Counted from the stretch's first letter, positions 12,365 through 50,141 are shown. The stretch is 64,000 nucleotides of DNA from Syncephalis fuscata S228 (GCA_025786725.1 JAHLTZ010000027.1:124001-188000); one strand, 5' to 3'. The notes: generated from the letters alone by a model not told the origin. A program made the numbers and translations.

Positions 12365-14191
12365 ATGTTATTTTCAAAATACCAACAATTGGTGTTATTG
12401 TTATTTATTTGTATATCAATACAAATCAACTATGTTCGTGCAAAAATCACTCTTTTCAATGGTACCAGCAGTTAGCATCTTATCCTTAACTGATCTATAC
12501 CTTTATCCCGAGTCTCAGCACGATTATTATGAAGGGATTGTAGTTGTCTGACACACCTATATATACAGAACCAAGCATAAAATGCTTTTTTCGCCAGTTA
12601 ATGCTTCCGACCCAGCAATTCAAAATATTATTAATAATGCATCTAAATATCCTGACTTTGCACTAGTCATAGGTTATTATTATCGTTTACTGAGTTACTG
12701 TAAACCGAAGAGCGAGTAAGTGTTTATATTATAATAGATAGACATGTGCTAACTGTATTTAGATCAATCAAGCAACAAATGGATTGATTCAGCAATCATC
12801 ACGTATGGGACTTCCACCAGTCAAACTCCTTATTCTATCCTCATATCGGCCACCACATTTTTATTTAGGTTACAATTGTGTTGCAAATTGTTTTGATAAG
12901 TTACAAAATAGATTTTCAGTATCAAGCTCAATTAGAAAAGCATTAATGAAAACATTCGATTATAATATACCATGGGAAATATCTAAAAACTATACAAACT
13001 TCCATTATACTGCTGAACAAGGTAAACGATTCAAATACTTGTTATATCAATACTAAACTGTTAGTAGAACCCAATCCATGGAATGAGATATTCTTTTCAC
13101 ACACATATATTGCCTACAAATGGACATATTTTGCCATAGTAAGTAATATAATTAAACAAGTGTATAATTCTAACTGTATTGCTACAGGTGTTGGGTGTTT
13201 TGTTGTATGCATGTATTCGTACTATAATGCTGGCAAGATTTAAGCTGTTGAAACGGAATCTGCTTTTGATCGCATTTGTTATCAGTTTTATATACTGTAT
13301 TTGTAAGTAGATTCAATCTATTTTAAAATATACAACTAATGATTATATACAGTTTTTTTAATACATCTGACTGCTCTACACAATGCATATGTATCACCAA
13401 TTCTTTTTAATGTTTACATGCTTTTATCAGGAATACCTTTTGATATAATATTTTGCATTGGTATGTTATTGTTAAGTTGGTTATATAGTATTAATATTTA
13501 ATTTTTAGGTCCATTATTGGCAAAAAACTATTTTCAAAAAAAGCATGATACCTGTTTGGCTTATTACTATTATTGATACCACAGTAAACATTTTACGAAT
13601 ATTAGGATTAAAAATGACTATAATATAATGGAATTATGATATTCAAAGCTACCAGATATGATTAGGTGTATTGTTCTACCATGGGTTACTATCGTAACAT
13701 TATGTGCACTTTGTAAGTTAGTATAAACTAAATGGTTTAGTTTAACTAAGTATATCTGATAGTGCTATGGCTTGGATTATATCTTATAAGCTTAGAAACA
13801 TCCTGATGGCATCGCAGGTTTATACAGGTAAAGTATCTATGTTTATTTCATGATTTACAATACTTACCTATCAACTAGTTGGCATGTCTTACTTTAATAG
13901 CCATTTTTACATATATACTATTTCCAATTTATTATATCAAATATTTCAAAGGTTCCCATACTTAACACCTGATGAAGTATTTAAAATAGACTTTACGCTT
14001 GATACAGCCTATATGGTGCGTGCACTTATATTCTTATCTGTTCTTGGTATAAAATGGCCGCATTCACCGAATTAACTGAACCAAAGATACGAGAACCACT
14101 TGGTGGAATGACAACTGTTGAATGTAGTACTGCTGCAGAAGGATCTCAACATACTGGCAATCGACTCGTGAATTTGCAAAAAAGCATTTAA
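12365..14191 (+). CDS. PA-like ectodomain 7TM receptor-like protein, dispersed copy with several apparent frameshifts (error-laden or pseudogene)
   Basis: Signal peptide MLFSKYQQLVLLLFICISIQINYVRA. Family motifs GLPPVKLLIL, EPNPWNEIFFSHTY, RNLLLIAF and TM7 MVRALIFLSVLGIKWP. Intron positions are shared with the paralogues at 31-42 kb. Confidence 0.7.
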
Positions 14192-24700: not shown

Positions 24701-25344
24701 CTTTATTGGAACGTGCACGTTTACGCAATCCCAAAGAGCCAGCACTTTGGCGTGAGTCTGTAGCGATTGAACGTCGTGCTGGCAATACAGCTGTGGCCAA
24801 GGCATTATTGGCAAAAGGTAATTAACAACGGTAGCAAGTTTATCTTTTATTAATTATTTTATTTGCAAAATCAGCCTTGCAAGAGTGTCCAAATGCTGGT
24901 ATGCTATGGTCAGATATGATATTTATGGAGCCACGGCCTATGCGTAAATCAAAGTCAGTCGATGCACTTAAGAAATGCGACAATGATCCTGTGGTGATTA
25001 TTGCAGTAGCCCGATTGTTTTGGGCTGAACGCAAGCTGGACAAGGCGCGTACTTGGTTTAGTCGTGCATGCAAACTTGATCCAGATAATGGCGATGCTTG
25101 GGCCTGGTGGTTCAAGTTTGAATGCCAGCAAGGCACGCAGGTAAGTGGCCATGAATACAATTACAGTGGAAATAGCATATACTAACGACGACTATGATAG
25201 GAACAACGTGAAGAGGTACAACAACGATGTTTAGCAGCCGAGCCACGTCACGGTGATCATTGGCAACCAATTGCTAAAGATATACGTAACGTTGGTAAAC
25301 GTAGCGGAGATCTATTGCCATTAGTAGCAGCTGAATTGGAATAG
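21793..25344 (+). CDS. PRP6: Pre-mRNA splicing factor Prp6 (U4/U6.U5 tri-snRNP, HAT/TPR repeats), ~14 exons
   Basis: N-terminal [71 protein letters not shown], multiple HAT repeats and C-terminal [10 protein letters not shown]...AEPRHG. Confidence 0.98.
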
Positions 25345-25431
25345 TTAGTTATTGTTGATAATACAAATAAAATAGACTAGAGTTATAGGCATCATAATAG
25401 AACCATTTATTGTTATTGAGCACAAATCAAA

Positions 25432-25793
25432 TTATTTGTTGCGAAGTTCCTCGACAAAGTCAATATACTTTTGCTGGGCTGCTTCCTTTGAAATGCCCTT
25501 GTTTTCGGTCCAAGCATCCCACTTGTACTTGGCTGGGTCGAGAGGATTCCAGCTTGATGGGCGGTCGGCTATTAATAGCAAATATAGAATAAAACAATGA
25601 TAGTTAGATATTTATGTATACTTAAGAATAAATCAGTATAACTGAGTATGCACTTACTGGTGTTGTCGCCCACGGTAGCCTGCTTGAAGAGACCGTACAG
25701 CTTTAGCTTGGTTTCGTCGGCGTTGGCCGAAGTAAAAGTAGTTACATCCTTAGCAGCTTGGATGAAAGCGGCATTTCCAGTAGCTTCAGCCAT
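25432..25793 (-). CDS. ACB1: Acyl-CoA-binding protein (ACBP), 2 coding exons
   Basis: Exons 25658-25793 and 25432-25568 give ...[62 protein letters not shown]. A probable 5'UTR intron lies at about 25821-25880. Confidence 0.95.
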
Positions 25794-28443
25794 AGTTGAT
25801 AGATGTCAAGATTGGAAATACTAATCAAAGTAAGTAAGCAAGTAAGTAAAAGAGAATAGACTAAGTTAAGTAGTACTTACACAGTAACCGTGGTGGTAAT
25901 GACAGTAGTGACAATAGTAGAAAAAGAGAACAAGAAGTTGGTTGGTTATAAAAGTAGTGAGTGGTAACCGGCAAGTTTTTTAAATACATCCGATGCAGGC
26001 TGGCTTCTAATCACGCAACACGTCATTCCGATGACATCTGATGCTGATTTTTTTGGCTAAATTCTACTTTGGGGGCATAAAGCAAGATTCATTCCAATCA
26101 AATTGTATTGTTATACAAACCACAATTATATTGCTTCCTATTAAAATGTTGCTGTTAATAAATTGATTTATTTAAAGGATGTAAAATACTGTTTGATTTC
26201 TTTAGAGCATTTGAGGCTGATCATTGTTGTTGCTAGCCATGTGTATAAAAATTACTCGAATATTAATAGAAGCCATACAGTTGCGATTATATGTCATTCC
26301 GCATTTGTTGTTATTGTTGCATTAATATATACATGCTATGTACCATTTCATTTTTAGCTTTTAAAATTTAATACTTGTTAATTGAGTTGAGATTTATTAA
26401 TAATAGAGCTAGAACAAAAATAAAATTAATATTAGATAGAGGAAGGCTAGGTGAGTATAGAATGGTATATATAATGCTAAATGTACGGTAAGAAAGTACA
26501 TAAGATGATGTTAAAGCTATAGTGCATATAACATAGTGAGGGTAATGAGTGAAGTGTGTTGGTGTATATAAACAATAAAATGTGTTTAATATGAATAGAA
26601 TGGAAATAATATAGGCGAATAGAGGGTATATGTGTACTGAATATATGCATACTGGATAATAAATCTATGATGATGAGTATTTGATAATTGATGTCATTCG
26701 CCGCCCATCATCATGTTCAATAGAAAGAATGCTATCAAATAGAGTCATTTGATCACCAAATCATATTAGATTATTGATAAATTGTTTAATAATTGCAAAA
26801 AAAAATATTTCTTTATTTAATTAATAAATGATATAATATATTTAATATGCTGATAAAAGCTATGAATGAATGTCGCCGTACATATAAAGACTATGAATAA
26901 ACTGAAGTGCTGACGAGGGAAATGTTTAAATAGTAGAATAAAATATAAAAAGTGATTAGCAAAAAGATAGTATATAGTTATTACAGTCATCGTATTAGCA
27001 GCTGTAAATATACAACAGTAGTAATGGCTTTACTGCTAATATGATTGCTGAACAATTCGTAGTGTCAGTACATAGATGCAGCTTATTAATGTGAGACTAA
27101 ACAAACATATATTAGCACGACATGTAATTTTGATTCATAGCAAATCAAGCCAATTAGTATTTTTGCAATATATATATGGAGCGTAGAAAAGCATTAATGA
27201 ATAAATATCGTAAAGTGTAAATGAAAAAAAAGAAAGTATGATGACATAGATTGTAAATTGTGCAATTAACAGAGTATATTTATAAAGACGTGGAACATAA
27301 ATATTAATGCAAAACAACAAACAGAATACGAATACTAAAAACAATTAATTCAAAGTGATATATAATATAGACATATTGATAGTAAAGTAGCGAGTGCAGT
27401 AAAGATAAATGTCAGTTGAAATTAAATGCCAATACTATAGGACAAACAAAGTGATTAGTATGATAGGAATGATAAATAACAAAATAGCAATCAATTGCGT
27501 AAATCAAAATATAGCTATAGAATATGCCAGCTATAAACCAATGAGTACGATAAAAAGAATAAATGACAAGCAATGAAGGTAGACATAGTTATAGAACAAT
27601 ATTATCAGTAAAGCAATGGTAACGTTAACAAAAAAGCACTCTAAATATATTGTTATTTAAAATTACTATTACACAGTGCTTCTAACATGTGTAAAATGTG
27701 ACATAATACACTCAGAAAGACAAAGCAATAAGTTACTAGTTATATAAATAAATGAAATGAAATTATTTTAACAGGCTTGAATTTATTACAATTGTGCACA
27801 CATACTATTTGTTTTTTTAAAGATAATTTACAATTTGTTTACATCCAAATTTATTCATTATGTTACAATGCAGTTAAAGTGAATTTTGAGCCCATATTCT
27901 TATTCTTAAAAGACAACTCTATTTATTTAATTCTTGTTAATCAATAGTTATTAGCTATTAATTGATATGATTAGCAAATCATGGGGTGTGAAAGTGGTCG
28001 ATCTTGCCTCCCATCCATTGATCTATTAATAATTATCACTATAATAATGGCAATAGCAATAATCATACCAAGAATTGCTTATCTTTTCTTCTAACGCCTA
28101 GCCTATCAACCTGTTTCACTAAAAAGCGCTTCAACTACTGTGTTAATAGTCTATGTACTATTCATTAGTTTCACGCTCACACCTGTTTTGCAGTATTGCC
28201 CTGCACTTCTTTTTCCCTTAATCTTTATTTTCTTTATATTGCAGTGCACCTGCCAGTACTCATCTTAAGACTTGTCTTTCCATTGCTTTATAGCACTTTC
28301 TTTTTTCATTAAAGCGATCTGCAGGATTGGTCGCCACGTGAGCTAGCCGTCGAGTGACTTGCCAATTTGATTGTCATTGCTTCTTCTTCTTCTTCCTCTA
28401 CTACCACTACTACCGCTACGCCTATTGCTTTGAATAGATTACT

Positions 28444-30493
28444 ATGTCATTGCGTCCTTCGTCTTCAATGGGTGGTGGGGGTGGGGGTGGACTTCGGCCG
28501 TTGCCAGCAATCCGAACTCGAGATATGGAGCGCTCTTTGCGTAAAGCAACACGTAGTCAACCACAGCCGATAAAACAGAAGCATCTTGATGGTAAGCAGA
28601 GGTTTTAATAGTAATTTAATAGTTTATTAATACGCATATCTGTCTTTAGTATTGGTAGCAGCCAGTTGGTCTCATGAAATTGCAATGTCAGATTGTTTTT
28701 CATTGCTTAATCAACGAATCCGTGAAGGTAACTCAATGGTATGTATTAATAGAGCAACATTAGTTTCTATACAATTATTTTATTTACTGATTTTGATTGG
28801 TATAGACGATCTTTAAATCACTCGTTGTGATCCATGTATTGATGCGCGACGGCAGTTCTGATCGTGTTATGGGCTACTTGGTAACAATGCCCACCTTGCT
28901 GAGCCTTGAGTATATGCGGGATCGCTCAAGTAAGTGTATGCATGCATAAGCATACCTTATCGTGCGCCAATCCTATCGACTGAATATGCTTAATCATTAA
29001 CTATTATTATGGTTTTTATTAATATAGATGGTATAACGGAACATATTCGCACGTATGCTGCTTATTTAGAAGATAAGGTGACGGTATATCGAGATCTGAA
29101 GATTGATTTTGTACGCGCATATGCTGGCACTTTTGCACGTGCCTCAGATCCTCGAGCTCGCTCTCGTATTGGCAATGCGGGAAATAGTCAGCCGCCCAGT
29201 ATTGGTCGGCTACGCCGATTGCCGATTGAAAAAGGATTACTAAAGGAGGTGGCGACAGTGCAGCGTTTAATAGGTGGATTACTAAAATGCCGTGTAAGTA
29301 TTGGCGAATTAATATATAATAATAATAATAATAACGAGTAATTAATCAATGGTTATTTAGTTCCACATGGACGAACTTGATAATTCAGTAGCATTAGATG
29401 CGTTTCGTTTACTTATTCGTGATTTACTGCGACTATTTCAAGCAGTCAATGAAGGTGTTATCAATATTCTGGAGCATTATTTTGAAATGGAATACGAACA
29501 AGCATCGCAGGCACTTTCGGTATATAAAGACTTTGCGCGACAAACTGAAAGTGTTGTAGACTATTTAGAGATGGCGCGCAAAATGGCATATGCAGTGCAG
29601 ATCAATATTCCTAAAATGAAGCATGTAAGTAGTAATATAATAGAAGGAAAAAAGTAATTTATGTGGCTGTTTTTACTATCATATAGCCGCCCATCTCTTT
29701 GGTAGATGCATTGGAAGACTATTTGAAAAGTATCTCATCCTCGATTGGTACACAGTCACAAACAACAAAGCCAGCGTTGATTCATGCACAAACACTTTCA
29801 TCGCAGATGCCAGGTAATTACACATAAATTATAGAGTTTATACACAAATATATGCTAATCTTACTTTAATTAGTGAGCACTGCACCACCTACAAGAGCCA
29901 CTACAATTTCTGTGTCTAAACCTGCATTGGCACTACAGCCATGGTCTGGAGCGACTAATAATCATCCAGCTCATGAATTGTATGCGCCTCGTGCTCCGCC
30001 GCCAAACGCACCACCAGAGATTATGGACTTTTTTGCAAGTATTGAAGAAGAGCAACGATTTTTGGACCAACACCCGGCTCTTGTCGAGTCGGCCGTCGCT
30101 AATACCGGTAATAATCCATTCCATGGCCAGACACCGATTGCCTATCAGCCGTATAATCCTTTCCGACAATCGCTTATGCTTACCCATGGTCAATCGGCCG
30201 TGGATCTTCCATCGCTTAATCCGTTTGGACAGCGGCCACCGTCAACGATACCGACGTTTACCGGCCAGTTAAATGGGCTTGATTTGGCAGTCGTACAATC
30301 AAACAATACAGCATCAAATGGTGGTCACTTAGCAGTGCCATCAGCCAATTTTAATCCATTTGGACAACCAGCGCCCGATAACAATAATCACTATACTTCG
30401 AGCAACTATGCATCGTCGTCAATCTATACTGCAGCTTCGTCAACATCGACGTCGCTGGAGAATTCGTCATGGGCATTGGCACCCTATATGTAA
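28444..30493 (+). CDS. ANTH-domain clathrin assembly protein (AP180/Yap180 family)
   Basis: RKATRSQPQPIKQKHL, FKSLVVIHVLMRDG, IRTYAAYLEDKV, LIRDLLRLFQAVNEGVINILEHYFEM. C-terminal low-complexity region has DFF and four NPF motifs. Confidence 0.92.
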
Positions 30494-31081: not shown

Positions 31082-33061
31082 TTATCGTGTGTTTATCTGG
31101 CTAGCTTGACTATAGCCATTATTGTTTAAGCCATGAGTATTGGACGACCTACAGATGGTAAATTGTCGTGTTTCGACACCATTTTGCATAGATTGCATCG
31201 AGTTGTCGGACGGTGCAGGAGTGGCAATCATCTCATCGGAACGAACTTCGTCAGCAGGGAATATACGCTTAACAAACTTGAAAGTATCAGGATCTTCTTC
31301 TGAAGTGGAACTACCACGGCTGGGAATACCGACAACGAGCAGCAATGTATATGATCTTAGAACAAAAGCAGTACACCTCGTAAGCGACCAGGCGGCGACG
31401 ACATTGGGGCCAGCCACCTCTGAGTCCAATGCAGCAAGAACGTTGCAAACAGACTGTATTAAGAATCCTAATGCACAAGTTATAGAGATGCGGAATAGCT
31501 ATTATTAGATTGCTTAATTAGTACGAGATTAGCAATCATTAAACAATATCGACTTACCTTACGCAGTGCTCGAAGCGTGCCTTTATTGCCGATCCACTTT
31601 AATGTATGACGTTTAAAAGTAATTGCTAATTAATGTATAGTAGACATAGTTGATCAATTAAAATGCGATGCATAGTATGATAGACTTACCATTATAAATG
31701 AATATGATAACAGCTATGAACTGAATGAGAGGCATGGCATAACTAAGGGTAATATCCATATTTGCATTTGTATCACCGATTGGCATGAACGTGACACTCA
31801 GTTTCATAATGCTCAATAAAAGTTGAATGCCAAAACAGATAGAAATACCAAATCTAAATGGAAAACGCCGATTTTTCTCTACGGCCCGGATAATAGGATA
31901 CCTAGTATATAGTAATAGCAGGGAAATGCCATTAGATTCAGCTTATTATGGCACGTATTCAACTCACCAAGCTAACAGCAATAGGTAGAAGGTAATGCAG
32001 TATAGTATAGAGCTTATATGAAAAAGCACATAGGCTTTCATTGCAACAATCCGCATGTGAATTGCTATAGTTGTTACTAATAGGCAATGATTTAGAATGC
32101 TATAGTTTAGCAATAGTGTTCGTAATAGTGCACTTACAAATAGATGAAACTAAACTGAATAGAAAAATAATGTTACGTTGTTCCCAGATAAAATCACCAT
32201 TAAAGATCAACATTAACAGGCGATAAAAGCCGTAGAATAATAATGCTACGTTAAGAATAGTAAATAATATGATTGCTGCACGGTAGTCGTAGGATAGAAA
32301 ATACTCATTCCATGGGCCAGGTTCTATTTAAATAGTATTGATTAACAAATGTTAGTAAACTGTTTTGCAAAAAATATTTCAAGTATATGCCAACCTTGGA
32401 TTAAAGTCGCCTTGAAAAAGTCTGGGTTCTTATCAAACGCATTTGCAAAATCTTCGTAGTATCGCTTTTCCAATAGAGCAGTTGGAATGGGCGGCTGACT
32501 GTCGGGTATAGAGGATTTATGTGACGTATAAATTAAAGTAAATGGACCGCCTTCTATACCCCGATAGTTATCGCGAATCAAGTAAAGAAACGCTTTAATT
32601 GGCGGGTAGCCATACTGCTGACGGAGCACCCGACTATAGGCAAGCACTTCGAGGGCAATCTAGAATATAGAAAAAGTAAAAGTGTTACTAACTGGTGACA
32701 GGTTTTATTAGCAAGCACTACTTACCTGAGTGACCGTTTCGCATTTGCTCTCTCTTCCATCAATTTCGTCGAGTGCCACGATCATTTGATTAAACGTTAA
32801 AGAGCCGTCGGCAGCAATGGGATTACGAAATACTTTTGTTTTATTGGTTGGTATTAATTTGCACGGCTCCTCGGTCGAAAATGTTGGATTGACCACAATG
32901 CCGGTCACTTCATAATGACCATAATCATTTTCGAATGAGTCAAAAGTTGGATATGTGACAGTCTTATTGTTCATTGTAAATGTTACCGAAGCGTTGGACC
33001 ATTGTGCAACGTTTAAAATAATAAACATGCCAATAATGCGTTTGATAGATAGAGAAAACAT
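31082..33061 (-). CDS. PA-like ectodomain 7TM receptor-like protein, cluster copy A (7 exons)
   Basis: Signal peptide, then YPTFDSF, SKCETVTQ, GYPPIKAFLYL, GGPFT..Y, IPTALL and EPGPWNEYFLS. Seven hydrophobic segments end with VLRSYTLLLVVGIP, followed by an S/T/acidic tail. Confidence 0.82.
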
Positions 33062-33808
33062 TATTGAGGCTATCGGCAATACGATTGCAAATGTCAATGC
33101 AGATTAATAAGTACTATAAACGAGCGAAATAAAGAAATGCGAAAGCTAACAGCCTACAAAAATGAATAAATAAACAAATGAACGGATAGACTGTTTGCTT
33201 ATTGCTCATGCAAATAAGTTGCTGTGGTGGCGGTAGTGGAAGTAGTATTAGTGGAAGCAGCAACAGGAGGAGTAGCTTGACAATGCTATGCACAAGAACC
33301 AGCGAGTGCAAATGAGATAGACGGAAAGAATATAGGTAGAAAGTAGTTAAAAACAGGAGCGTATTATAGAAACGATGTATAGTGTTGCCACATGTTATAT
33401 ATTCAATACATTATTGCAATGGAGTGCTAAAACACAAACAGGTTTTGTTACAAGAATGTCAAGTTTATTCGATGTTGTTTGAGCTGTGCATGATTTAGGC
33501 CATAGTCGGGTGATTTGTTCCTTGACAATCGAGAATAAATAAAACATGTGACCATACACATCCCTAACATGCTGTTTTTTACAACTCGTATAAATGTTTA
33601 TTATAGCCAAATCTGGCATGATAATGACAGAAATAGTAATAAGGGGAAGTTATGAATCAGGAATAAGTATAGCTGCTAGTCTTTCGGGCATCGTTTGTAC
33701 ATCATCCAAATTGTGTTAAAATATCAAATTTGCCATTAAATTATGGTGATAGTAATTATATAAACAGCAAATCTGTGCCTTCTCTATTAATCATTCAATA
33801 TAAACTAT

Positions 33809-35831
33809 TTATCTACTGAATTTGCGATTGTGCGGCCCAGGTACGATTATTTCGTTATCGGACTGATCGCTGTATAGAGTGGCATCGCTACTCGAACCAT
33901 TCTCGTCCGTCTCGATTATCTTGGACATAGATTTTGGTATGTGCGCTTCTTTCATGGACGGCAAATCGGACTTGGCTATGTTAAGATTGTTTGTGACCTC
34001 GTATGGATCATACGACAATTCGGATGATGCATCAGTTCGGCTAAGTCCAAAGCGGCGGGCCAGTCGTCGAATAGGCGTGAAACGGGACGAGAAGTTGCTA
34101 GTGAGCGGCAGGCTATCATCTGGGTTTGCGGCACGCTTTGATGGCATACGTACGCCAAAGATGAATAGCAAAGCGACAGAACGTAGTGTATAGCCAACAA
34201 AAGCAAGTACTTGCATGGTAATTACGTTGCTTGGTGTCGTGCTTCTATAGGACCCGAGGACAATGAAATTGGCAGCCGACAGCATCAAAACGCCTGCAAA
34301 TCCTACAGCGCCAATATAGCTCAGTTTGATAAGAGCACTGTAGGTTTTGCCATTGATGCGGTGCTTCCGACCTGTAATGCAAAACACTACGGTAAAGTAT
34401 ACGAAGATAAGTGCGTTGATCAATTGCAGAGCAGGTCCACCGTATAATGCAATTGGAAGTATTTTCATACGGGTTTCCGTATCAATAAACAGTAATGCAT
34501 CGACAACTTGGATGATATAGCATCCGACGAGTAATCCGCCGGATAGGCAAATGATGATACGCTGTGGGCGTACACAGCGTCCTGGGTGAATGGCAGCAAA
34601 AAGCCAATTCCTAAATATAGATTTACATTGTTAGCAAAAGTGTGTAATTGTAAGCATAGCAAGTATTACCATGTGTAAAGTAGCAGGTAAAATGCTATTG
34701 TAAACATAATTGTGCTAAATTGCCCAAGCAATATTGTAGTTTGTCGGCGCATTTGCATCGGCATTGAGACGATAAGCACTAGTGATGATTAGAATAAATA
34801 ATGCAATAATTAGTGAAAAGGTAATTATTTAAGCGAATCAGGTACTTACAAAGGGCAGAAATGGCACTGATTAAAAAGATCAGATTTCGGCGTTCAAATT
34901 TGAGTTGTTTAGCGACAATCAACTTGCCCACAGCAACTAGGCCGTAAAAGACAAAGCCGGCATTCTTTATGGTAGTTATAATAGACATAGTCAGCACAAA
35001 AGACCATAGTAATATGTTCACTGTACTTACCAAACCAACCAACACGTAGACAAATGCATAATACGTAGGAGAGGTAAATAAGGTGTTCCATGTTCCTGGC
35101 TCTATTAAAGCGTGGTAAGTATCAAAAAATGACAAATTTACAAATTAAAACTTACCGTATTTTATATCAGCAATAACTTTGTAACCATTGCCTTTGGCCT
35201 GTTGTTTTATAAAATCAACCGAGTTTTCAGGCATCAAAAGCGCTACTGGCATAGCTGGTGTCCCATCAGGAGTACCAATGGTTTTTGCTTGGTATGCTTC
35301 GCTATTTGGGCCACCACGAAGATTAACAGCTGGACGACCTTGCCATTCCTCTAACAAATAAAGAATCATTGCAATGCGTGGATAGCCAAGTTTCTCCAGT
35401 GTGCTGCTGAATGAGACCATATTGCTGGCCACCTAAATACACAATACATTCTATTTAATACTATTATTGGTAATAGCTTACAACAGGCTTACCTGAGCTA
35501 TTGTCTGACAGCCAGCTTGATAGAAATCTAGCTCTCTGATTACGGCAATTGTAGATGTTGCATTATTGACGCCGATAATTATTGCCGGCTGGATATTGCC
35601 TATGTTTATAGTGCATGGATCACCGTATTTAGCGATGCTGACGGGAACTGCTATACCCGTCTCACGATATTGTAACTGGCCTCCGGAGGCCTGGAAATAA
35701 TCGAAGGTGGGATATGTCACCACTATAGGGCTGGCAGTTGGATTGTTTGGCTTGGGTGGAATCGTAAAAGTAACATGAGCAGTTGTATAATGGCTTATGG
35801 CCAGTACGGCCAATGCAAGAAAACGCAGCAT
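33809..35831 (-). CDS. PA-like ectodomain 7TM receptor-like protein, cluster copy B
   Basis: Signal peptide MLRFLALAVLAISHYTTA, then YPTFDYF, AGCQTIAQV, GYPRIAMILYL, GGPNSEAY, MPVALL, EPGTWNTLFTS, RRNLIFL, FYLLLYTW and TLRSVALLFIFGVRMP, with an S/D-rich tail. Confidence 0.82.
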
Positions 35832-36988
35832 ACCTGACAATACAAAGGTTCAAGAAACTAGAATACTGTAGAAGCGGACCGGCCGCAAACAAGACAAGCG
35901 TTAAGTAGTTTAGGGATCAAAGACAAAGAATGAGCTAACAGAGCAAGTGAAAGAAAATAAGGCGCCAGCCAGTGGCAAATAAAAAGAAGCAAAAACGGGC
36001 GAGTCCTGCTCGCGGCGAGTCGTGATAATTTAATCAAAAGGCTGCCTTCAACCAAGCCTAGCCGGTTAGCAATGCCAATGGTATTGTTTTAGATAGAGGA
36101 GGGGTAAAGAGAAAGCAGGGGGATGATACGTAATCGATAGCCATGCATATCACTAAGCGGGATTACAAGTCGCAGTTTTGTTTCATTCACAAATATGATG
36201 GATTGAAGGACTGAGGTTGAAACAAAAAATATAAAGCAGCGCCATAAATAGACATTCAAGCTCAATTTGTCGATGATTTATAATAACGCATTCCACGTAG
36301 AAAGTCGAATAGTGACCACCAATCCATTGAAACACAGCGTGCTACTGGATCAATTATAAGCCGACTTTTATTTACACCTATGATTGGAACTATTATTTGA
36401 AATAAAAAGCTGTTGGATCACGGTTGTTTGGTCACAGTCATAGCATTATCAAACGATTGTTTGTAAACCAATTGGTATATTACTATACACCGTATGAGTG
36501 CGAGTTGGCAATAGCACGTACAAGTATGTTTGATTTGTTTGTTTAAACAACAATATACCGGTAGCACAAGGCGGTAAAGTTTACCGTTTGCAGCACATAT
36601 ACTGGTTTGTTTTTGGTAATTACTATAGATTATTCTGCTGTACCACCCACAAAGTTGATCTACATGCAGCATGCTATAACTTAGTGCACTGTCATTTTTC
36701 GTCATAGTTCATTACTGCACTGGCGATTAGGCTTTTAGTCAAATAGTTAGCAGCACATAAGGGTAATGGGGCTATTGCTACGATGTACACGAGTTCTCCG
36801 TAAAAATAAGTACTAATAATTTGAAACACTAGCCAGTAAACGTCTTATCACTATTTTCAAACTACAGGCAATCTTTTTGTTTCAAAGTCTTTGCTCCTTC
36901 AGCATGCGTCGATTGTTTCACTTGTGACCAAATAAAACAATAACAAGGCCTATTATGTGCCTGAATTTTAAGGATGAATAATCATTAT

Positions 36989-38980
36989 TTATGGAGAATC
37001 AATACGACAATTGAATAATTGCTGCCATGTAGTAGTTTGTTTGGCCGCATTTTCGATTTCAACATCGAATCGTGGCTTCTCCACCACAGAATCCACATCT
37101 GATGCGGTGTCAGTTCCTTTTGACATGACCGATTTGCGCGACAAGGCCAGTTTATCCAACGAAATAGGATCACCAAGACCCATGAACGGCACGGCCCCGA
37201 GACAACGTAACATTCCACTAACGACCAAAAACGTAAAGGCGGCCATGTGTCCATGTGCGTCATAGTTGGCTTGGTGACTCAAAAATAGCGAGGCAAAGAC
37301 GGCCTGGGCAATCATGTATAGAAATCCGGGCAGTGCAAGGCGTGCAATCTACAGTTAGTTGACGTTAATATTCATCGGATTAAGTAGGTGGTTACTCTTG
37401 CCTTATTAAACCGTTTATACCGGATATTGGCCACCATGTCCGCCGTGCCTTGGAGTTCCTTATTGGCCATGCCTAATGATTAAATTTAGAAACATAAGTA
37501 TAGATGATTGTGGTGATTGTTACCTATTACAATAAGTATAATAGCTATTATGACGTAAAGACATAACAATGCAACGCGACCACCTGAGGCAATTCGCATG
37601 GCCTCTGCATGAGTATTATTGTTTGATGTACTCATATCCACTATTTGAGCAATAAAACAGAAAACTTCAATTGCAAGTGCTGCTTGACAAGTAAAGAAAA
37701 GACAGCTTATTGAGGTGTTCGTTTTTTTTGTCATTTCTCTTGCTGTTCGGTGCCTATTGTTAACTGTTGATTAGCGTAATGAAGCCTGACAAGGTATACA
37801 TACCATAGCATTAGTTGAAGATAGAAAGATATACCATAAATTAATCCATCCACGAGCCGTAGCAAATATGTTGTAGCGGTAACGGTGCGTAGTGGAAGCA
37901 TGATAGAAAAGCCTAAAATTAACATTAGTGGACTGATTAAATACATCTACACGGTAATATTACATATACATGCTACAATGGCCAAGATTTGTGAAAGCTG
38001 TAATGGCTGGACCGAGTAGTTTGCCGCGGAAGATTGCTTCATAAAACGGGCTGCACTTATTAGAGTTAAAACAGAACTCTACATAAGCAATATATATCAA
38101 AAACACGAATAAATCAATGTATATCTTGCACTTACAAAAACACAGGCTACATATCTAAATGTAACAAAGTCTTGATTGAGAAAAATAGTATTCCATTTAC
38201 CCATTTCTAATCATGACAGTATAAGTAAATAAATCATACACAGGGAATATCTGCTTTACCTTTGACAACGTCCACAACAATTGGAACTTGTGCTTGTTTT
38301 AATCTTGCATATATATTATCTGAAGCAAAAGTGGGTACCAATGCTGTTTGAAATTCAGGACTAGTGTCATCATCTATTAAATGTAGTGATGAATAGGGAT
38401 CGGAATATGGACCACTAAAGTCCCCGGTAATGCCTTCTTCCTTTGTGGTAAATATTAGAACAATTTTTGCCTCTGGATAGTTGGTTATTTCAAGTCCGTT
38501 GGCATAGGCAGCCGCAGCATTGGCCACCTTAATAATATTTGTAATTAGCTATGTCATTAAATAATATTTAAATGTTACACGCATCGTGCCAATTACCTGA
38601 GCGTAGGTGGTACACTGTGCTGCTGCAGCCGCGTCCCAGCTAATGCCAATAATACTTGTATGGTACTGGTCTTTGACATCATTTTCTATGATGTGACTGT
38701 CGCCTGTACGATTAAACGCGAGTGTGCAGCTTCTACTATTAGCAGATGCTCGGAATTGCGGAAGCAAGAGTAACCCAGTATAATTGTAGTCGGGTGTAGT
38801 TATTTCGAAATAATCTTGAGTAGGTAAAGCAGGAATGTTAAGTAGGCTTTTGTCGGCCACGATATTACTATCGTGCACTAAATTCATTCGAGCAAAGACA
38901 CCAACGGCTAATGCACCAATAATTAATCCAGTACGAGCAAAAGCACCGCCTGCAGCGCTTAGTAACAAGAAAGATCGCAT
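36989..38980 (-). CDS. PA-like ectodomain 7TM receptor-like protein, cluster copy C
   Basis: Hydrophobic N-terminus, then LPTQDYF, AQCTTYAQV, NYPEAKIVLIF, SGPYSDPY, FQTALV, EMGKWNTIFLN, FYLQLMLW and MLRCLGAVPFMGLGDP. Confidence 0.8.
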
Positions 38981-40414
38981 TGTTTGGTTTGGGAGGTAAT
39001 TAAAAGGTAGAGCTGCTGCTTAGAAAGTTTAGAAACGTTTTGATTATTGTAATATAATGTATTGGTGTGCTAAGTCAGTTAGACAATAAGGATTAATGTA
39101 GAGTGCAGGATCTATATAATAAAATACTTGCAGGCTGTTGGTAGATAATGAAAGAGATAAAAATTGCGAATAGAAGTAAAAGCAAACATTAGCCTGCCAA
39201 TGTCTCTGGACGAATTTATGAATTACTTTGAATGGCAGTAGACAAGGAAGCGATCAAGTATAGCAATCCATTAACCAAGTTAAGTAATTAATCCGACGGA
39301 CTTTTGGCTATTTCTCATTCAATTGGCAAATATCGGAATTTCTAATATTGGAATACAAAAGGAACATTCTATATTGTATATGGATAGGTAAACGGGAGTA
39401 TATTCATTAGAGTAGTAATTTATTGTCAAATTATCAAATATGACATCATTGTAAAAGTGGCCGAATTACTAGCAAGTGGTTTAGTAATTGGTTACAATTA
39501 AGCTTGTGTACGCCCTATAAAGATACAAAGTTCGTCGTTGTAATTTATGTGGCCACAGTGTGCTGATCAGTAAAACTATAGCTATGTAAAAATAATTTTG
39601 TTTATTATTCTACTTAGCAGCCATTTTACGTAATAAAAGTACTCGTGAATTAATTTTATAAATTATCGGCTTTACGTATGCTATCAGCAAATAGAATCTT
39701 AACTAGTCGTTTTTGTGTCAATTACCATCGAGTCATGCGTGTGCATGGCATGCTGTGACGAATCCCGTTTGTGTGGAATTGCTGTATTATAACGAGTAAA
39801 CATCCTTGCAAATCCTGTTATAATCCATAATAGCCTGCCTTTGTTTAGCAATGCTTGCAGATTCAACTTTTGCACCGCGTGCATCATACAACCAGCATTT
39901 ATCCGCATATAGCACTGCTCGGTAAACCCGAAAACTTGAATGCACGCTTCTTGCCTTTACTTCTACTGTTGCACTTTCGTTCAAGTATTTACTATCTATT
40001 ACACGCAACAGTCCCTTAACACCCTCATTCGCCGCTTTCATATTTGTTGTGTCTGACTTGCTATTGTTTACAATATACACGTAAATACATATCTATTCTA
40101 CCTACAAAGTTCTAGAAGCACTTGTAGGATTAAATATCGCTGTTGCTTTTATTCTTAGATGTCTATATATTTATTTACTCAGTCACACAAGTAATTATAC
40201 CATTTGTAACGCAGTGCCCCTACCAATCATTCCAAGACTAAAAGGACTGCGCACTTTGTCAAATACGATTGCTGGTAAACGCGCTTTTGATACGTGAACA
40301 AGAGCAGAAAATATCTGAATTTTTACGGTTATCCGTGGTGAGCACGCCACATCAGGCCGAATGTCAGCATTGTGTTGGATGCTGGCAGCAGGGTGCTCAG
40401 CTTTTAGTCGTTTA

Positions 40415-42466
40415 ATGATTTCTTTGTTTCTGACCACGCTCGTGCTATTCTTGGCATGGCCGTCGACGCTTGTGTCCGCGTATATTGTGTTTGGCGACAC
40501 CAATACCAATGTTAGCGTGCCAACTGTAGATTATTTCCAGCAATCCGTCAAACATTATGACCGGTATGGCCCAATGATTCTGCCATCATTCGACCAAAAT
40601 GCCTCTTGTACTTTTAAATCGCCAGCGCCCAATCCATTGGTGGCCAATACATTGGCTCGATCGGGTTTTAGCACAGTACTAGCGGTCAATTGGACTGATG
40701 CTGCAAATTCGGGCTGTAATAATTATGGGCAGGTAAATACACATGATTAGTAATTAAATTGCGTTTATGTAAACAATGTTCTTAATTTAGGTCATAAATG
40801 CGTTGGAGAGTATAGAAAATGCAATGCAGCAATCTGGATTCCCAGTTCCATTTATTATATTATTGATGGTACCAGTTTATTTCCCCGGCCCTTTTGGCGG
40901 TCCTCTCACCGATAAATACTTGTCACACAGTGCCCATACAGGCAACGAGTTTCCGCGTACAGATGTGGCCATCATGAATATTAAGGACTATTCAAATTTT
41001 ATTAATAATAAGGATAACGCTGCGTCAACGCAGTATGTACGCATTGTCCAAGGTAGATTACTAATTATAAGCAATAGTAACAATGGTAATAATACACTAA
41101 ATCTTTTATGTAGAACAAGGAGTATGGAATAGAGTGTTTCTCTCCAATGGCTATGTTGGTATTACATGGACACTGTTTGCCATTGTAAGTGTCCAATAAC
41201 AACAATGATAGCAGCAGCTGTTTAGTATCCATATTTATATTATAACAAAATAATTTAGAACACCGTCATCATTCTCTACGGGCTTTATACGCTAGTGATG
41301 ACCCTTGCTACACGCACTTTTGCCGCGGATATTCGCAATGTTGTATTTTTACTTGGTATTTTTGCAGTGATTGGTAAGTATTTTTAATATACAACATAGT
41401 AGTTTTTAATCATTGTTGACTAGCAAATGCAACATCCATTCCACTTAAAAACGCTAGCTACATGAGAGTTGTATTTGAGCAAATATCCAGTTTTTTATCA
41501 AGTATCGCTTTCTATATGTTACTTTATTTATGGTAAGAAGCAACAATGAAGTTTATATCGATGTATCAATATTCATTACTTTTTACCACAGGAGTTCTTT
41601 ATTGTCGCAAATTAAACAGGATCGTAGTATGTATCCACTTCGATGCTTTCTATTTTTCGGTGCATCCGTGGCAACCTGGACAATAGCTATAAATCTTATT
41701 TGGCTAAATCACTGGGATACCAGCAGTATCGATTCACTTATTGATGTCAACTTCTACTTGATACCAATAACACAACTAATGGTTGCAGTTCTATTTTGCA
41801 TTGTCGGTAGGTTAAAATAGAAACATTGCTGAGCAGCTGGTAATTTTAAGCAGGGTACCGTTTCCGGTCTCGTCGTAATCAATGCCGTATGTCCAGTGAC
41901 ACTCAGCGCGCGCTTACAAAGGTAAATACACGTAAACAATATACAAACTTTAATTAGTAATACCATTTTATTGCGATTAGTTGGCATGGCTAAGCGTCAC
42001 TGGATTTGCAACATTTCTATTGCAAGCTATCTCTAATTTGGTGTCATCCCAGACCAGTTACGCAACCAACGTTTCAGCAGTAGCGGTTGTGTATAATTTT
42101 CTCACGATAGCGTGCACCATTCGTATCATGGCTATTATATTAGTTTTAGGCGTACGTGTACCAAAACATCTTCGCAATACCGGCGGCACTTCAGGCATTG
42201 TTAGCTCCACTGGTGAACTACCTAATACCGGCAGTTTTATAGAAGCTGAACAGAAAAGATTGGGCGTAGAGACACTGGAGGCTAAAATGTTTTTTATTCA
42301 AACTTATTCCCCTACCTATTCTCCAAATTACTATCATCACAATGAGGTACGTATGCTAGCATCACTTTGTTTTAAATATATTAATTGGCTGATTGTAATC
42401 TAGGCGCAACGATTCTCTATCCAATTGACGCCCGATCCATTGGATAATACATATCGAGTTACATGA
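40415..42466 (+). CDS. PA-like ectodomain 7TM receptor-like protein, cluster copy D (divergently oriented)
   Basis: Signal peptide MISLFLTTLVLFLAWPSTLVSA (alternative ATG at 40361), then VPTVDYF, SGCNNYGQV, GFPVPFIILL, GGPLTDKY, TDVAIM, EQGVWNRVFLS, IRNVVFL, FYMLLYLW and TIRIMAIILVLGVRVP. Confidence 0.82.
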
Positions 42467-47502: not shown

Positions 47503-50141
47503 TTAGCGTTTGATAATCATTGTAGGCGATTGCCAAACATCATAGTCTTTCCCATTGTTAGGATTGCCAAAAATACGCAATGCACTTATTTTGATGTAGT
47601 AGCGACCATTGGGCGCACTGAGGGTCAATCGAGGCCTATTTGGAGCATTTATAGTATAGCTACCAACCCAACTATTCTTATAAGACTCGTTATCCTTTGT
47701 AAGGTCGTTGCGGCCCAGATGTTCGGTTAGAAATCCAGGAACCGTACCCATGTATTTGTTTGTGTCGGCGTTGTAAAGATATACTCCTGCTTGAATTGAA
47801 GGCATTTCAAGACGGAAGGTCAATTCGGGATAATCGTTGTTTGCCATCGTATAAATAACGGGTTCACGTGCCTGACGAACATTAACATTTGTGGCTACAC
47901 TGATAAGACTTGGTAGCTGTTCGGTTACTTTCATGACATGCAAATCACGCATACGTCCTTTGATGCCCAAGTACGGCACAACGGCTTTGTGTATACTGGC
48001 ATCCTTTACTGGCGAGCCATTTGGACCGGATACTGGCGTAATCTCGATAAATCCAGAGTAGATCCAGTATTCGCCGGAGGGTAAGCTAGGTGGCTCAATG
48101 AATTGAACGTTGACCTGTGCCGACCCGCCAGCCTTTACATACACTTTGGGAGTGCTTATAGTCACCTGAGCTGCCGCATCTTTTTGTTCTGGCTTGTTCG
48201 GTACTACTCCATCGGCTCCAATGCCTCGTACAGACATAGCAGGAAGATGGGCAATGGCAAAGACTCGATCTTCTGGGTTATCATTAAAAATGGTGATTTT
48301 ACGCGTGCAAGCGCCATTTTTCATGCCAAACTCTGTGTCGTTCAGAGCAATACGTCCAGGCGCCACATTGGTTGTTCCGTAGATCATGCGCTCAACGTTA
48401 ATAAGACCAGCACCTTGTTTTGCCACAGACGTGTAGCGACCCGGAACATTGGGATCAGAAATTGGCTGAGCTGTATTCTGGAATGCCTGGCGATAGCTTG
48501 TGACCGAATAGTCGCGACGACCTTTAGCTTGAAGACCAAGTGCTACCGCACCAACAACATATGGTGTAGCCATAGATGTACCGCTCATTACTGTGTAGGA
48601 ACCCATTGTCAAAGGATAGGTTGAAAAGATGTTGCCACCTGGTGCGGCTACGTCAGGCTTAATATCAAGGTCCGGACTTGGGCCCCATGACGAAAACTCC
48701 GAGATTTGACCACCCGTCTCGTTGGGTGTCGGCTCAATAGATGGGTTGAAGTTTGCACGCACGCCATGTTGGTACTCTTGTGTAGCAAGAATTTTCCAAA
48801 TGCTTTGGCCATCTTTTTCAGAAATGAAAATGACCGGAATGGCCGTTGCTTTAGGATCATTTTGATGAACACTCGCCATGCTCGACAATTCGCCACCATA
48901 AACAATAATGGCGGTCACGCCAGCACTGCGTGCAACACTGACCTTTTGCGCGATTGTGCAACCAGTTTGAGAAATTAAACTAATGGTGCCGTGGCTATTT
49001 TGTGGCACAAATTTACATCCGGAGTTATCAATACCGGCCGGTACTGATAGGATATTTACATTGGTAAAATTAAATATCGACCCACTAGCCAGAGTCACAT
49101 AGGAATATAGTGGCCTCTGTTTGGTTTGTAGTTCAAAGACAGTAGGTACAAGTGCTACATTATCAACTGAGGCAATTGACAGTGCCAATGGAGCGATAGC
49201 AGGTGCAGACGATTGCCATACACCTTGCCTGCCAACATTGCCCATAGCCGCAACTACAACTACACCACGAGCGGCAAGTCGTTCAGCTGTAGATGCTCGA
49301 GGATTATCTTCCCAGGTATTGCCTGTGTAGATTGACAGGTTAATAACATCCATACGATCGATAAGAGCACGCTCCATCGCGGCAATTAGCACATCGCCTT
49401 CAAGTGCACTATTACAACCGGAAATACGATAAGCACCAAAGGTCACTTGCGGAGCAACACCAACCAGACCGGCCTCGTTAGCGCCAATGATACCGGCAAT
49501 ATGAGTACCGTGTCCACCACAAGTGTCGCGAGGATCTGCGTCTGGCACCATTGGTGAGCCGTTGCCTTGGTAGTCATCGCCAACGAAATCCCATCCATAG
49601 GCTACGCGGCACTTTGGTCCAAAACATCCACCCAATGCCGGATGCAAATAGTCGATGCCAGTATCGATAATGCCCACTTTGATGCCTTTACCGCTGAGAC
49701 CGTAAAGCTTGTGCACACGATCTACGCCGGTCATAGCGTGTGTGAATGGCTTAGAGTTGGAGGTGCCGGAATCACCTGTAACCTGACCGGCAACAGTGGC
49801 ACTTGCCATCAACCAGACATGCTTCACTTGCTTGATGCCCCAAATAGCATCGATGTCTCGATTCTCGACACGCATACTAATGCCATTGATGGCCACCTGA
49901 TAGACCAATCGCACTTCATAGTAAATTTCAAGCTATTGATGTTTTGTTGGAATGCTTTTTGCTCTTGAATGACTTCTTTTGTACCAGGCTCTTCATGCAT
50001 CTCCACAATCACCGTACTGATCGGCTCGCCCTTGGTGAATCCTTTCAGCGCAGGTAATAAATTATTGACGGGCTGACTACACACGGCAGATACAAATATT
50101 GCCAGTAGCGAAAACGTTTTCAGTATGGTATGGACACGCAT
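47503..50141 (-). CDS. Secreted subtilisin-like serine protease (S8, Vpr/C5a-peptidase-like with PA insert and Fn3-like C-terminal domain), intronless
   Basis: Signal peptide MRVHTILKTFSLLAIFVSAVCS, triad IIDTGID / HGTHIAG / SGTSMATP, FSSWGP..DIKPDVAAPGGNI and QGAGLIN. PA insert GCTIAQKV..ARSAGVTAIIVY..IPVIFIS. One apparent 1-bp deletion near 49927. Confidence 0.95.

Follow-up and report, generated by a model that had tools for sequence, protein, structure and literature searches.

The 64,000-nucleotide stretch of Syncephalis fuscata S228 (Zoopagales) analyzed here (GCA_025786725.1, JAHLTZ010000027.1:124001-188000; hereinafter the window) is eukaryotic DNA with a G+C content of about 37% and short GT-AG introns, and carries between 31.1 and 42.4 kb four adjacent, intron-rich, and very diverged paralogous genes, of which g1, g2, and g3 lie on the minus strand and g4 on the plus strand. 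We identify these as members of a family, which we call PA-7TM for its predicted combination of a PA-fold ectodomain with a core of seven transmembrane (TM) helices, and consider them probable membrane glycoprotein-type receptors, for which a putative ligand class, cellular location, and transducer are proposed below. A receptor of this kind would be built of a cleavable signal peptide, a PA-fold extracytoplasmic domain, an invariant juxtamembrane E-x-G-x-W-N motif, a seven-helix bundle similar to those in G-protein-coupled receptors (GPCRs), plus a disordered, Ser/Thr-rich cytosolic tail. A model that had read the DNA of the window (hereinafter the original prediction) had put forward a signal peptide, a PA-like ectodomain, seven TM helices, and a Ser/Thr-rich tail, an architecture with which the structural models, family alignments, and charge bias presented here agree.

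Four colinear paralogues, two of them seen in spliced transcripts

The window genes were searched exon by exon, and full-length work was carried out on database orthologues (P0002 and others) and on an intronless paralogue from the same genome (L001:989-3232:-, contig C179; 748 amino acids). A family profile (A1) built from nine full-length database homologues maps the exons of all four cluster genes in colinear order, with g1, g2, and g4 spanning the whole profile. The exons of the four paralogues also match each other at 30-35% identity, and the e-values of these mutual matches and of those to A1 (1e-10 to 1e-39) exclude chance likeness, which bears out the original call of four adjacent, diverged paralogues, each of them complete, at the positions given. 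The first gene, g1 (minus strand; coding sequence 33061..31082), matches profile positions 7-449 colinearly and has seven exons (33061-32726, 32659-32395, 32323-32138, 32076-31966, 31899-31690, 31625-31558, and 31498-31082). The second, g2 (minus strand; coding sequence 35831..33809, part 33585..35880), covers profile positions 8-471 and has six (35831-35493, 35432-35156, 35101-35031, 34964-34850, 34778-34670, and 34609-33809); the exon limits of both genes are given to about +/-2 nucleotides. In g3 (36989..38980, minus strand), the match is significant over profile positions 35-308 and weak but colinear over 283-420: the ectodomain and TM1-TM3 are clear, and the TM4-TM7 half is very diverged (E 0.4-0.8), with open hydrophobic segments present. 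The last gene, g4 (40361..~42403, plus strand, with an uncertain 3' end), lies divergent from g3, has about eight exons, and matches profile positions 8-469 in eight colinear pieces.

RNA data came from one public run (X1, Logan contigs), and the comparison covered g1 and g2. A 1911-nucleotide contig over 31071-33346 skips six introns of g1 and a 1779-nucleotide contig skips five of g2; all 11 read CT..AC on the plus strand, that is, GT..AG on the strand of the genes, and they confirm the splice sites that had been proposed for these two genes. The contigs are at least 99% identical to the window and carry adapter sequence at their ends; this, together with the spliced introns, marks X1 as complementary DNA, so that g1 and g2 are transcribed and spliced. 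One of the g2 introns (34965-35030, minus strand) has 66 nucleotides, is in frame without a stop codon, begins with GTAAGT and ends with AG, and lies within TM1, where it would add 22 hydrophobic residues if left unspliced. We had inferred it from the spacing of 45 residues between an invariant Trp and an invariant Arg in the homologues, and the RNA then showed it to be spliced out. Gene calling based on open reading frames would retain this intron. The k-mer depth in X1 was about 1136 for the g2 contig and about 41 for that of g1; g2 is perhaps among the transcripts that are more abundant in this sample, the k-mer depth of a Logan contig being a poor measure of expression.

All motifs listed in the original prediction are visible in the family alignments. 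In the ectodomain and its membrane-proximal end these are PT-x-D-[YF], two cysteines, GC-x-T-x-x-Q, G-[YF]-P, GGP-x4-Y, P-x-A-L, and E-x-G-x-W-N, with R-N..F, AFY-x-LLL-W, and GVR-x-P as further aligned motifs. Across the whole family, conservation is highest at the juxtamembrane Trp-Asn, the Arg that starts TM2, the aromatic-Leu-Trp of TM3, a Tyr before TM5, and several Phe and Leu residues in TM5-6.

The ectodomain is predicted to adopt a PA fold

The ectodomain comprises about 170-180 amino acids, in most members with exactly two cysteines and one to three N-x-S/T sequons. That of the intronless S. fuscata paralogue was modelled alone with AlphaFold2 from an 18-row alignment (pLDDT 82.8, pTM 0.80), and structure searches were run with Foldseek and VIA-align. 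Foldseek returned 51 matches at E<=1e-3, all PA-domain-bearing among the 50 listed, the best being ZNRF3 (8e-6) and GRAIL (1e-5), with RNF43, VSR1, the PaAP aminopeptidase, and the transferrin receptor also present. In VIA-align, the best 18 matches were all PA-bearing (Z 10.8 to 5.7, 115-143 residues aligned), including ZNRF3 (Z 10.8), VSR1 (Z 10.4), GRAIL (Z 10.3), and the insert of the SBT3 subtilase (Z 9.3), and unrelated folds began at Z 5.0. A PA fold, as had been predicted, is thus well supported for the AlphaFold model of the ectodomain by both structure searches.

The corresponding Pfam model (PF02225; cut-off 23.9 bits) finds nothing at E<=1 in the window exons of the family, in at least ten full-length homologues, or in the intronless paralogue; in the S. 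fuscata genome it matches 36 places, none of which falls within a PA-7TM member. A Pfam search with ten single window exons likewise gave no match. The original prediction had also pointed to a sequence likeness between the ectodomain and the PA insert of an S8 protease elsewhere in the window; an hhalign comparison of the ectodomain profile with this insert gave a probability of 0.85% and E 0.065, which is not significant, so that the motif-by-motif likeness does not count as evidence of homology. The two have the fold in common, without a detectable sequence relationship.

A predicted GPCR-like bundle with an N-out topology

The AlphaFold2 whole-protein model of P0002, the Thamnocephalis orthologue of g2 (residues 45-535, 24-row alignment; pLDDT 81, pTM 0.79), has an alpha/beta ectodomain followed by seven long helices. 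When its membrane part was searched with Foldseek, GPCRs made up the best 24 of the 50 matches listed, and the first bacteriorhodopsin came at rank 25 (best E 3e-3; TM-score by target about 0.5). An exhaustive VIA-align search likewise placed GPCRs on top, with GPR35 at Z 17.3 (247 residues, root-mean-square deviation [rmsd] 4.4) and dozens of others at Z 15-17. As modelled, the bundle is GPCR/rhodopsin-like, as the original prediction had it, and the structure searches give it no class assignment. Class A GPCRs (GPR35, PAR1, P2Y1), which match at Z 16-17 with rmsd 4.4-4.7 over about 225-250 residues, have an N-out orientation and a phosphorylatable tail in common with the family. However, the identity to them is 5-10%, the DRY and NPxxY motifs are absent from the PA-7TM family, and no GPCR model of Pfam (7tm_1/2/3, Frizzled, Dicty_CAR, STE2/3, Git3, and others) matches at E<=1 or E<=10 in the members scanned. 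The general plan is also that of GPCRs with large ectodomains.

The predicted topology rests on several properties of the sequences. In ten members, Lys and Arg account for 115 of 618 predicted cytosolic residues versus 40 of 679 predicted outer ones, a 3.2-fold higher density inside, and signal-like hydrophobic segments are evident at the N-termini of family members. This charge bias, together with the signal peptide and the cysteines and sequons on the N-terminal side, supports an N-out, C-in arrangement of the seven helices of the model, as first proposed.

The original prediction had likened the TM3 motif to that of TOM1/THH1/GPR137-type proteins, and this likeness is a weak lead. In the language-model features of the ESM Atlas, the 7TM part comes closest, among named clusters, to GPR137_N and THH1/TOM1 (0.87), followed by PRRT3 and TPRA1. 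The THH1/TOM1 model of Pfam (PF06454) aligns with the 7TM part of P0002 at 14.3 bits (E 0.027), colinearly over model positions 15-257 of 273, which is below its 25-bit cut-off. A signal was seen in one of about 15 members scanned and the cut-off was reached in none, and a PF06454 search of the S. fuscata genome gave no match. GPR137 and THH1-TOM1-TOM3, which share a similar aromatic- and Leu-rich TM3 motif, differ from the PA-7TM proteins in having no ectodomain, are endolysosomal or tonoplast proteins, and have no known G-protein coupling.

Several other memberships were examined and rejected. The GOST/Lung-7TM model (PF06814) had a single match, in an unrelated gene on contig C361, and none at the family loci, and found nothing in P0013 and P0019 at E<=10; a GOST-type beta-sandwich lumenal domain is ruled out by the PA fold of the ectodomain model. 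PalH/Rim21 (PF08733; cut-off 34.1 bits) reached 22.1 bits in P0016 and 10 bits in P0002, and did not match other members. An SPPL2-type protease is contradicted by the presence of seven helices instead of nine, by the lack of a Pfam match to Peptidase_A22B, and by an Atlas TM-score of 0.36.

A large family with old, retained copies

Searched with phmmer against 1.84 billion representatives, the TM3-TM7 piece of g2 recovered no more than 17 proteins at E<=1e-3; every one of them that bears an organism name is a hypothetical protein of Thamnocephalis, Piptocephalis, or Syncephalis. A word-indexed homologue search returned almost nothing besides the query, probably as hydrophobic or low-complexity words had filled its candidates. 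In the 29-Mb S. fuscata assembly, we obtained 93 exon-level profile matches on more than 25 contigs, and counted by hand, at the most conserved segment (juxtamembrane/TM1-2), at least 46 distinct family loci, a lower bound with 84 of 205 candidates scored. The family matches on C138:10599-14501 and C307:154453-159018 have scores that are identical piece by piece, which points either to two haplotigs of the same locus or to a segmental duplication of very recent date.

In the ESM Atlas, there is a Zoopagomycota cluster of 95 members, and unnamed clusters of 55-67 members, mostly labelled as Endomyxa or unlabelled, resemble the family in features (0.94-0.95) and in shape and may be relatives from outside the fungi. 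One cluster of 55 hypothetical proteins has a similar two-domain shape (TM-score 0.63 over 410 residues), and in one unnamed cluster 10% of the members carry the Pfam PA domain. Within Zoopagales the family is expanded, and it may be specific to this order.

The four-gene cluster is syntenic one-to-one with the Thamnocephalis sphaerospora contig KZ992517.1, which reads in the opposite direction, with gene order and relative orientation the same. The Thamnocephalis orthologues are a gene for 423 amino acids (L002 12922-14620) for g1, P0002 for g2, a gene for 548 amino acids (L002 6440-8614) for g3, and P0014, in the same position and orientation and 45-63% identical, for g4. A flanking block of a PRP6-like gene, an ACBP gene, and an ANTH gene keeps its order in Syncephalis, Thamnocephalis, and Piptocephalis (window 22077-30325, L002 22192-15669, and L009 1-5917). 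In Piptocephalis tieghemiana, two intronless family members in divergent orientation (L009:7486-8814:- and L009:10070-11407:+) come after this block. The one-to-one synteny with Thamnocephalis and the partial synteny with Piptocephalis indicate that the duplications are old and the copies retained. Between Syncephalis and Thamnocephalis, the receptor exons are 29-63% identical in amino acids, as against 68-87% for the flanking genes, and paralogues are on average 21% identical in the ectodomain, as compared with 24% in the 7TM part. The family evolves fast, but without quick turnover at this locus. The window genes and their Thamnocephalis orthologues have six to eight exons with partly different intron positions, and both syntenic Piptocephalis members and the S. 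fuscata paralogue at L001:989-3232:- are intronless; within the family, introns have thus been gained or lost, or copies have arisen by retroposition.

Genomic neighbors of PA-7TM genes

Contig C306 carries, at 469.5-470.5 kb and 484.6-486.0 kb, the sole two G-alpha genes above the Pfam cut-off in the S. fuscata genome. Between and after them lie four family members, at 476.0-477.7 kb (plus strand) and at ~488.5-490.3, 491.0-492.7, and ~493.5-495.2 kb (all minus strand), the whole stretch being C306:469482-495199 (loci L003, L006, L004, and L007). The G-alpha genes are 3-7 kb from family members, and about 3% of the genome is that close to one; the chance probability of this linkage, estimated at roughly 0.03-0.05 with the two genes counted as one linked event, is suggestive, and the linkage is circumstantial evidence for G-protein coupling. 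In Thamnocephalis, Piptocephalis, and S. plumigaleata, the family members that were examined had neither G-alpha nor protease neighbors, so that the G-alpha linkage has so far been observed in S. fuscata only.

The S8 subtilase of the window (47503..49914, minus strand), which provides context and is not a family member, is intronless and has a true PA insert and an Fn3-like domain (Pfam: Peptidase_S8, 2e-47; PA, 7e-12, residues 293-372; fn3_5, 1e-6). On five contigs (C190, which holds the window, C79, C179, C113, and C279), a PA-bearing gene and a family locus are less than 15 kb apart, as against about 1.2 such cases expected by chance (Poisson p of about 0.008, the expectation being rough). 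The neighbors that were checked, namely the window gene and that on C279 (L005:6038-6880, equivalent to C279:252038-252880), are S8 subtilases with a PA insert. A common genome compartment could account for this proximity, as could a functional link of a secreted protease with a receptor.

Comparison with known PA-bearing and seven-helix proteins

The PA-TM-RING E3 ligases ZNRF3/RNF43 and GRAIL, which are the best match of the ectodomain (Foldseek 8e-6 to 1e-5; VIA-align Z 10.0-10.8 over 128-137 residues), resemble the PA-7TM family in having an N-terminal PA domain after the signal peptide and directly before the membrane anchor. In these ligases the PA domain is an extracellular protein-binding module; unlike the PA-7TM proteins, which have seven helices and no RING, they have one TM helix and a cytosolic RING, and there is no detectable sequence similarity between the two. 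The PA domain of the plant vacuolar sorting receptor VSR1 is alike in fold and lumenal, and its ligands are short peptide determinants of cargo. In the GC-x-T-x-x-Q motif of the PA-7TM family, the residue that precedes the Gly is variable, and VSR proteins differ from the family in their TRX-like domain, EGF repeats, and single TM helix. Among well-known architectures, that of SPPL2a/b alone combines a signal peptide and a PA domain with a polytopic membrane core; their nine TM helices carry the YD/GxGD motifs of aspartyl proteases, which are lacking in the GPCR-like, seven-helix PA-7TM proteins.

A 2025 survey recognizes 14 fungal GPCR classes and three mammalian-type families, all of them without a PA domain and without a GPR137-like core (PMC12842992); this agrees with the original statement that no characterized fungal GPCR class is known to have the architecture described here. 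Of the classes surveyed, Pth11 (CFEM + 7TM) is like the PA-7TM family in combining an extracellular domain with a 7TM core and in being expanded in a parasitic lineage, and class 10 (Lung-7TM/GOST, PF06814) matches a different S. fuscata gene. A full-text literature search found neither a PA + 7TM architecture nor anything relevant on zoopagalean receptors. We rate PA + 7TM as an undescribed domain combination within seven-helix receptors with a ligand-binding ectodomain; the PA-7TM members are already public as hypothetical proteins.

Functional interpretation

Syncephalis is an obligate haustorial mycoparasite of Mucorales. We know of no account of how such mycoparasites find and recognize their hosts, and most of the receptor classes that have been studied in Dikarya are, to our knowledge, absent from early-diverging fungi. 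By virtue of its at least 46 loci, its transcription, its synteny across genera, its PA fold and GPCR-like bundle as modelled, and its interleaving with G-alpha genes, the PA-7TM family is a concrete, testable candidate for a host- or nutrient-sensing system of Syncephalis. In the mechanism that we propose, the PA domain would bind a peptide, a protein terminus, or a glycoprotein ligand, outside the cell or in a lumen, by analogy with ZNRF3/RNF43, GRAIL, and the plant vacuolar sorting receptors. Ligand binding might then be relayed via the conserved W-N stalk into the helix bundle, and the cytosolic loops and tail could engage a transducer, such as a G protein, an arrestin-like adaptor, or the endocytic machinery. 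A more far-reaching version, which we regard as doubtful, is that the PA-7TM proteins form a new fungal GPCR class and the main chemosensory repertoire of the zoopagalean mycoparasites; their PA domains would sense host-derived peptides or protein termini, perhaps freed by the secreted PA-subtilases that are often their neighbors, and signaling by the G-alpha proteins encoded within one of the PA-7TM clusters would trigger host recognition and haustorium formation.

Several points weigh against reading the family as receptors. It has no sequence-level membership in PA, GPCR, or any other Pfam family, and the family profile has no match at E<=10 among PDB sequences. The fold assignments derive from AlphaFold models whose underlying alignments are shallow (18-24 rows), and the models are those of one orthologue and one paralogue instead of the window genes themselves. 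The Z of 15-17 obtained for the helical bundle exceeds the background only modestly, microbial rhodopsins reaching Z 14.9. GPR137 and THH1/TOM1, which weak signals place nearest among named 7TM families, are proteins of endolysosomes or vacuoles and are not known to couple to G proteins. Finally, g3 and a fifth copy in the window (g5, described below) may be non-functional.

A possibility that we take seriously without expecting it to hold is that the PA-7TM proteins are endolysosomal or vacuolar proteins acting as lumenal cargo-sorting receptors or nutrient-sensing scaffolds and not as cell-surface GPCRs, with a lumenal PA domain that would bind cargo or degradation products as in VSR1, RNF13/RNF167, and SPPL2, and a 7TM core like that of GPR137B or TOM1. 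The feature-based proximity to GPR137_N and THH1/TOM1 and the colinear, sub-threshold match of P0002 to the THH1 model both point that way, as do the rank of the VSR1 PA domain among the best structural matches and the occurrence of VSR and SPPL2A among the Atlas shape matches; an extracytoplasmic N-terminus, moreover, fits a lumenal orientation. Set against this, the THH1 signal is confined to one of the members scanned and the model finds no match in the genome, a family of at least 46 diverged copies is unusual among housekeeping proteins for sorting or scaffolding, there is the linkage to G-alpha genes, and ZNRF3, RNF43, and GRAIL, which give the best PA matches, are ligand receptors of the cell surface or of endosomes. 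Were the proteins endolysosomal nonetheless, they would link PA-type lumenal binding to GPR137/TOM1-like proteins, for which no ligands of their own are known.

The size of the family, the very low identity between its paralogues, the stronger divergence of the receptor orthologues than of their flanking genes, and the origin of all named members in haustorial mycoparasites would also suit a fast-evolving repertoire for non-self or host-range recognition, under diversifying selection and with rapid birth and death of copies, as the original prediction had in part suggested. At this locus, the suggestion is weakened by one-to-one orthologues whose order and orientation are kept in another genus, which makes the duplicates old, and the ectodomain is just slightly more diverged than the helix bundle; we therefore find such a repertoire unlikely. 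Even more improbable, in our estimate, is a transporter, channel, or membrane enzyme that merely resembles a receptor. Seven-helix bundles do occur in channels and pumps, as the scores of the microbial rhodopsins illustrate, and one database source names P0007 an ABC-type transporter. However, Pfam yields no transporter or enzyme family at E<=1, and the ABC label is without Pfam support. No retinal-lysine-type or catalytic motif is found among the conserved family positions, and GPCRs are the top structural matches. We accordingly favor membrane receptors as the probable identity of the PA-7TM proteins.

Database names and a fifth copy in the window

Two members, P0013 and P0019, bear the automatic UniRef name 'Lung seven transmembrane receptor-domain-containing protein', for which there is no Pfam support at E<=10, and P0007 bears the JGI/IMG name 'ABC-type multidrug transport system...', for which there is none at E<=1. 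These three names look like annotation errors.

An additional paralogue had been placed at 12.4 kb, and a PA-7TM copy (g5; 12365..14072, plus strand) is indeed recognizable there by its juxtamembrane/TM1 piece (13013-13153, E 1.5e-8) and its TM6-7 piece (13902-14066, E 0.007). These alone are significant with the family profile, which does not detect the ectodomain part of the claim. The copy sits in a stretch of 29% G+C and, judged by its sequence, is a very diverged or decaying member of the PA-7TM family.

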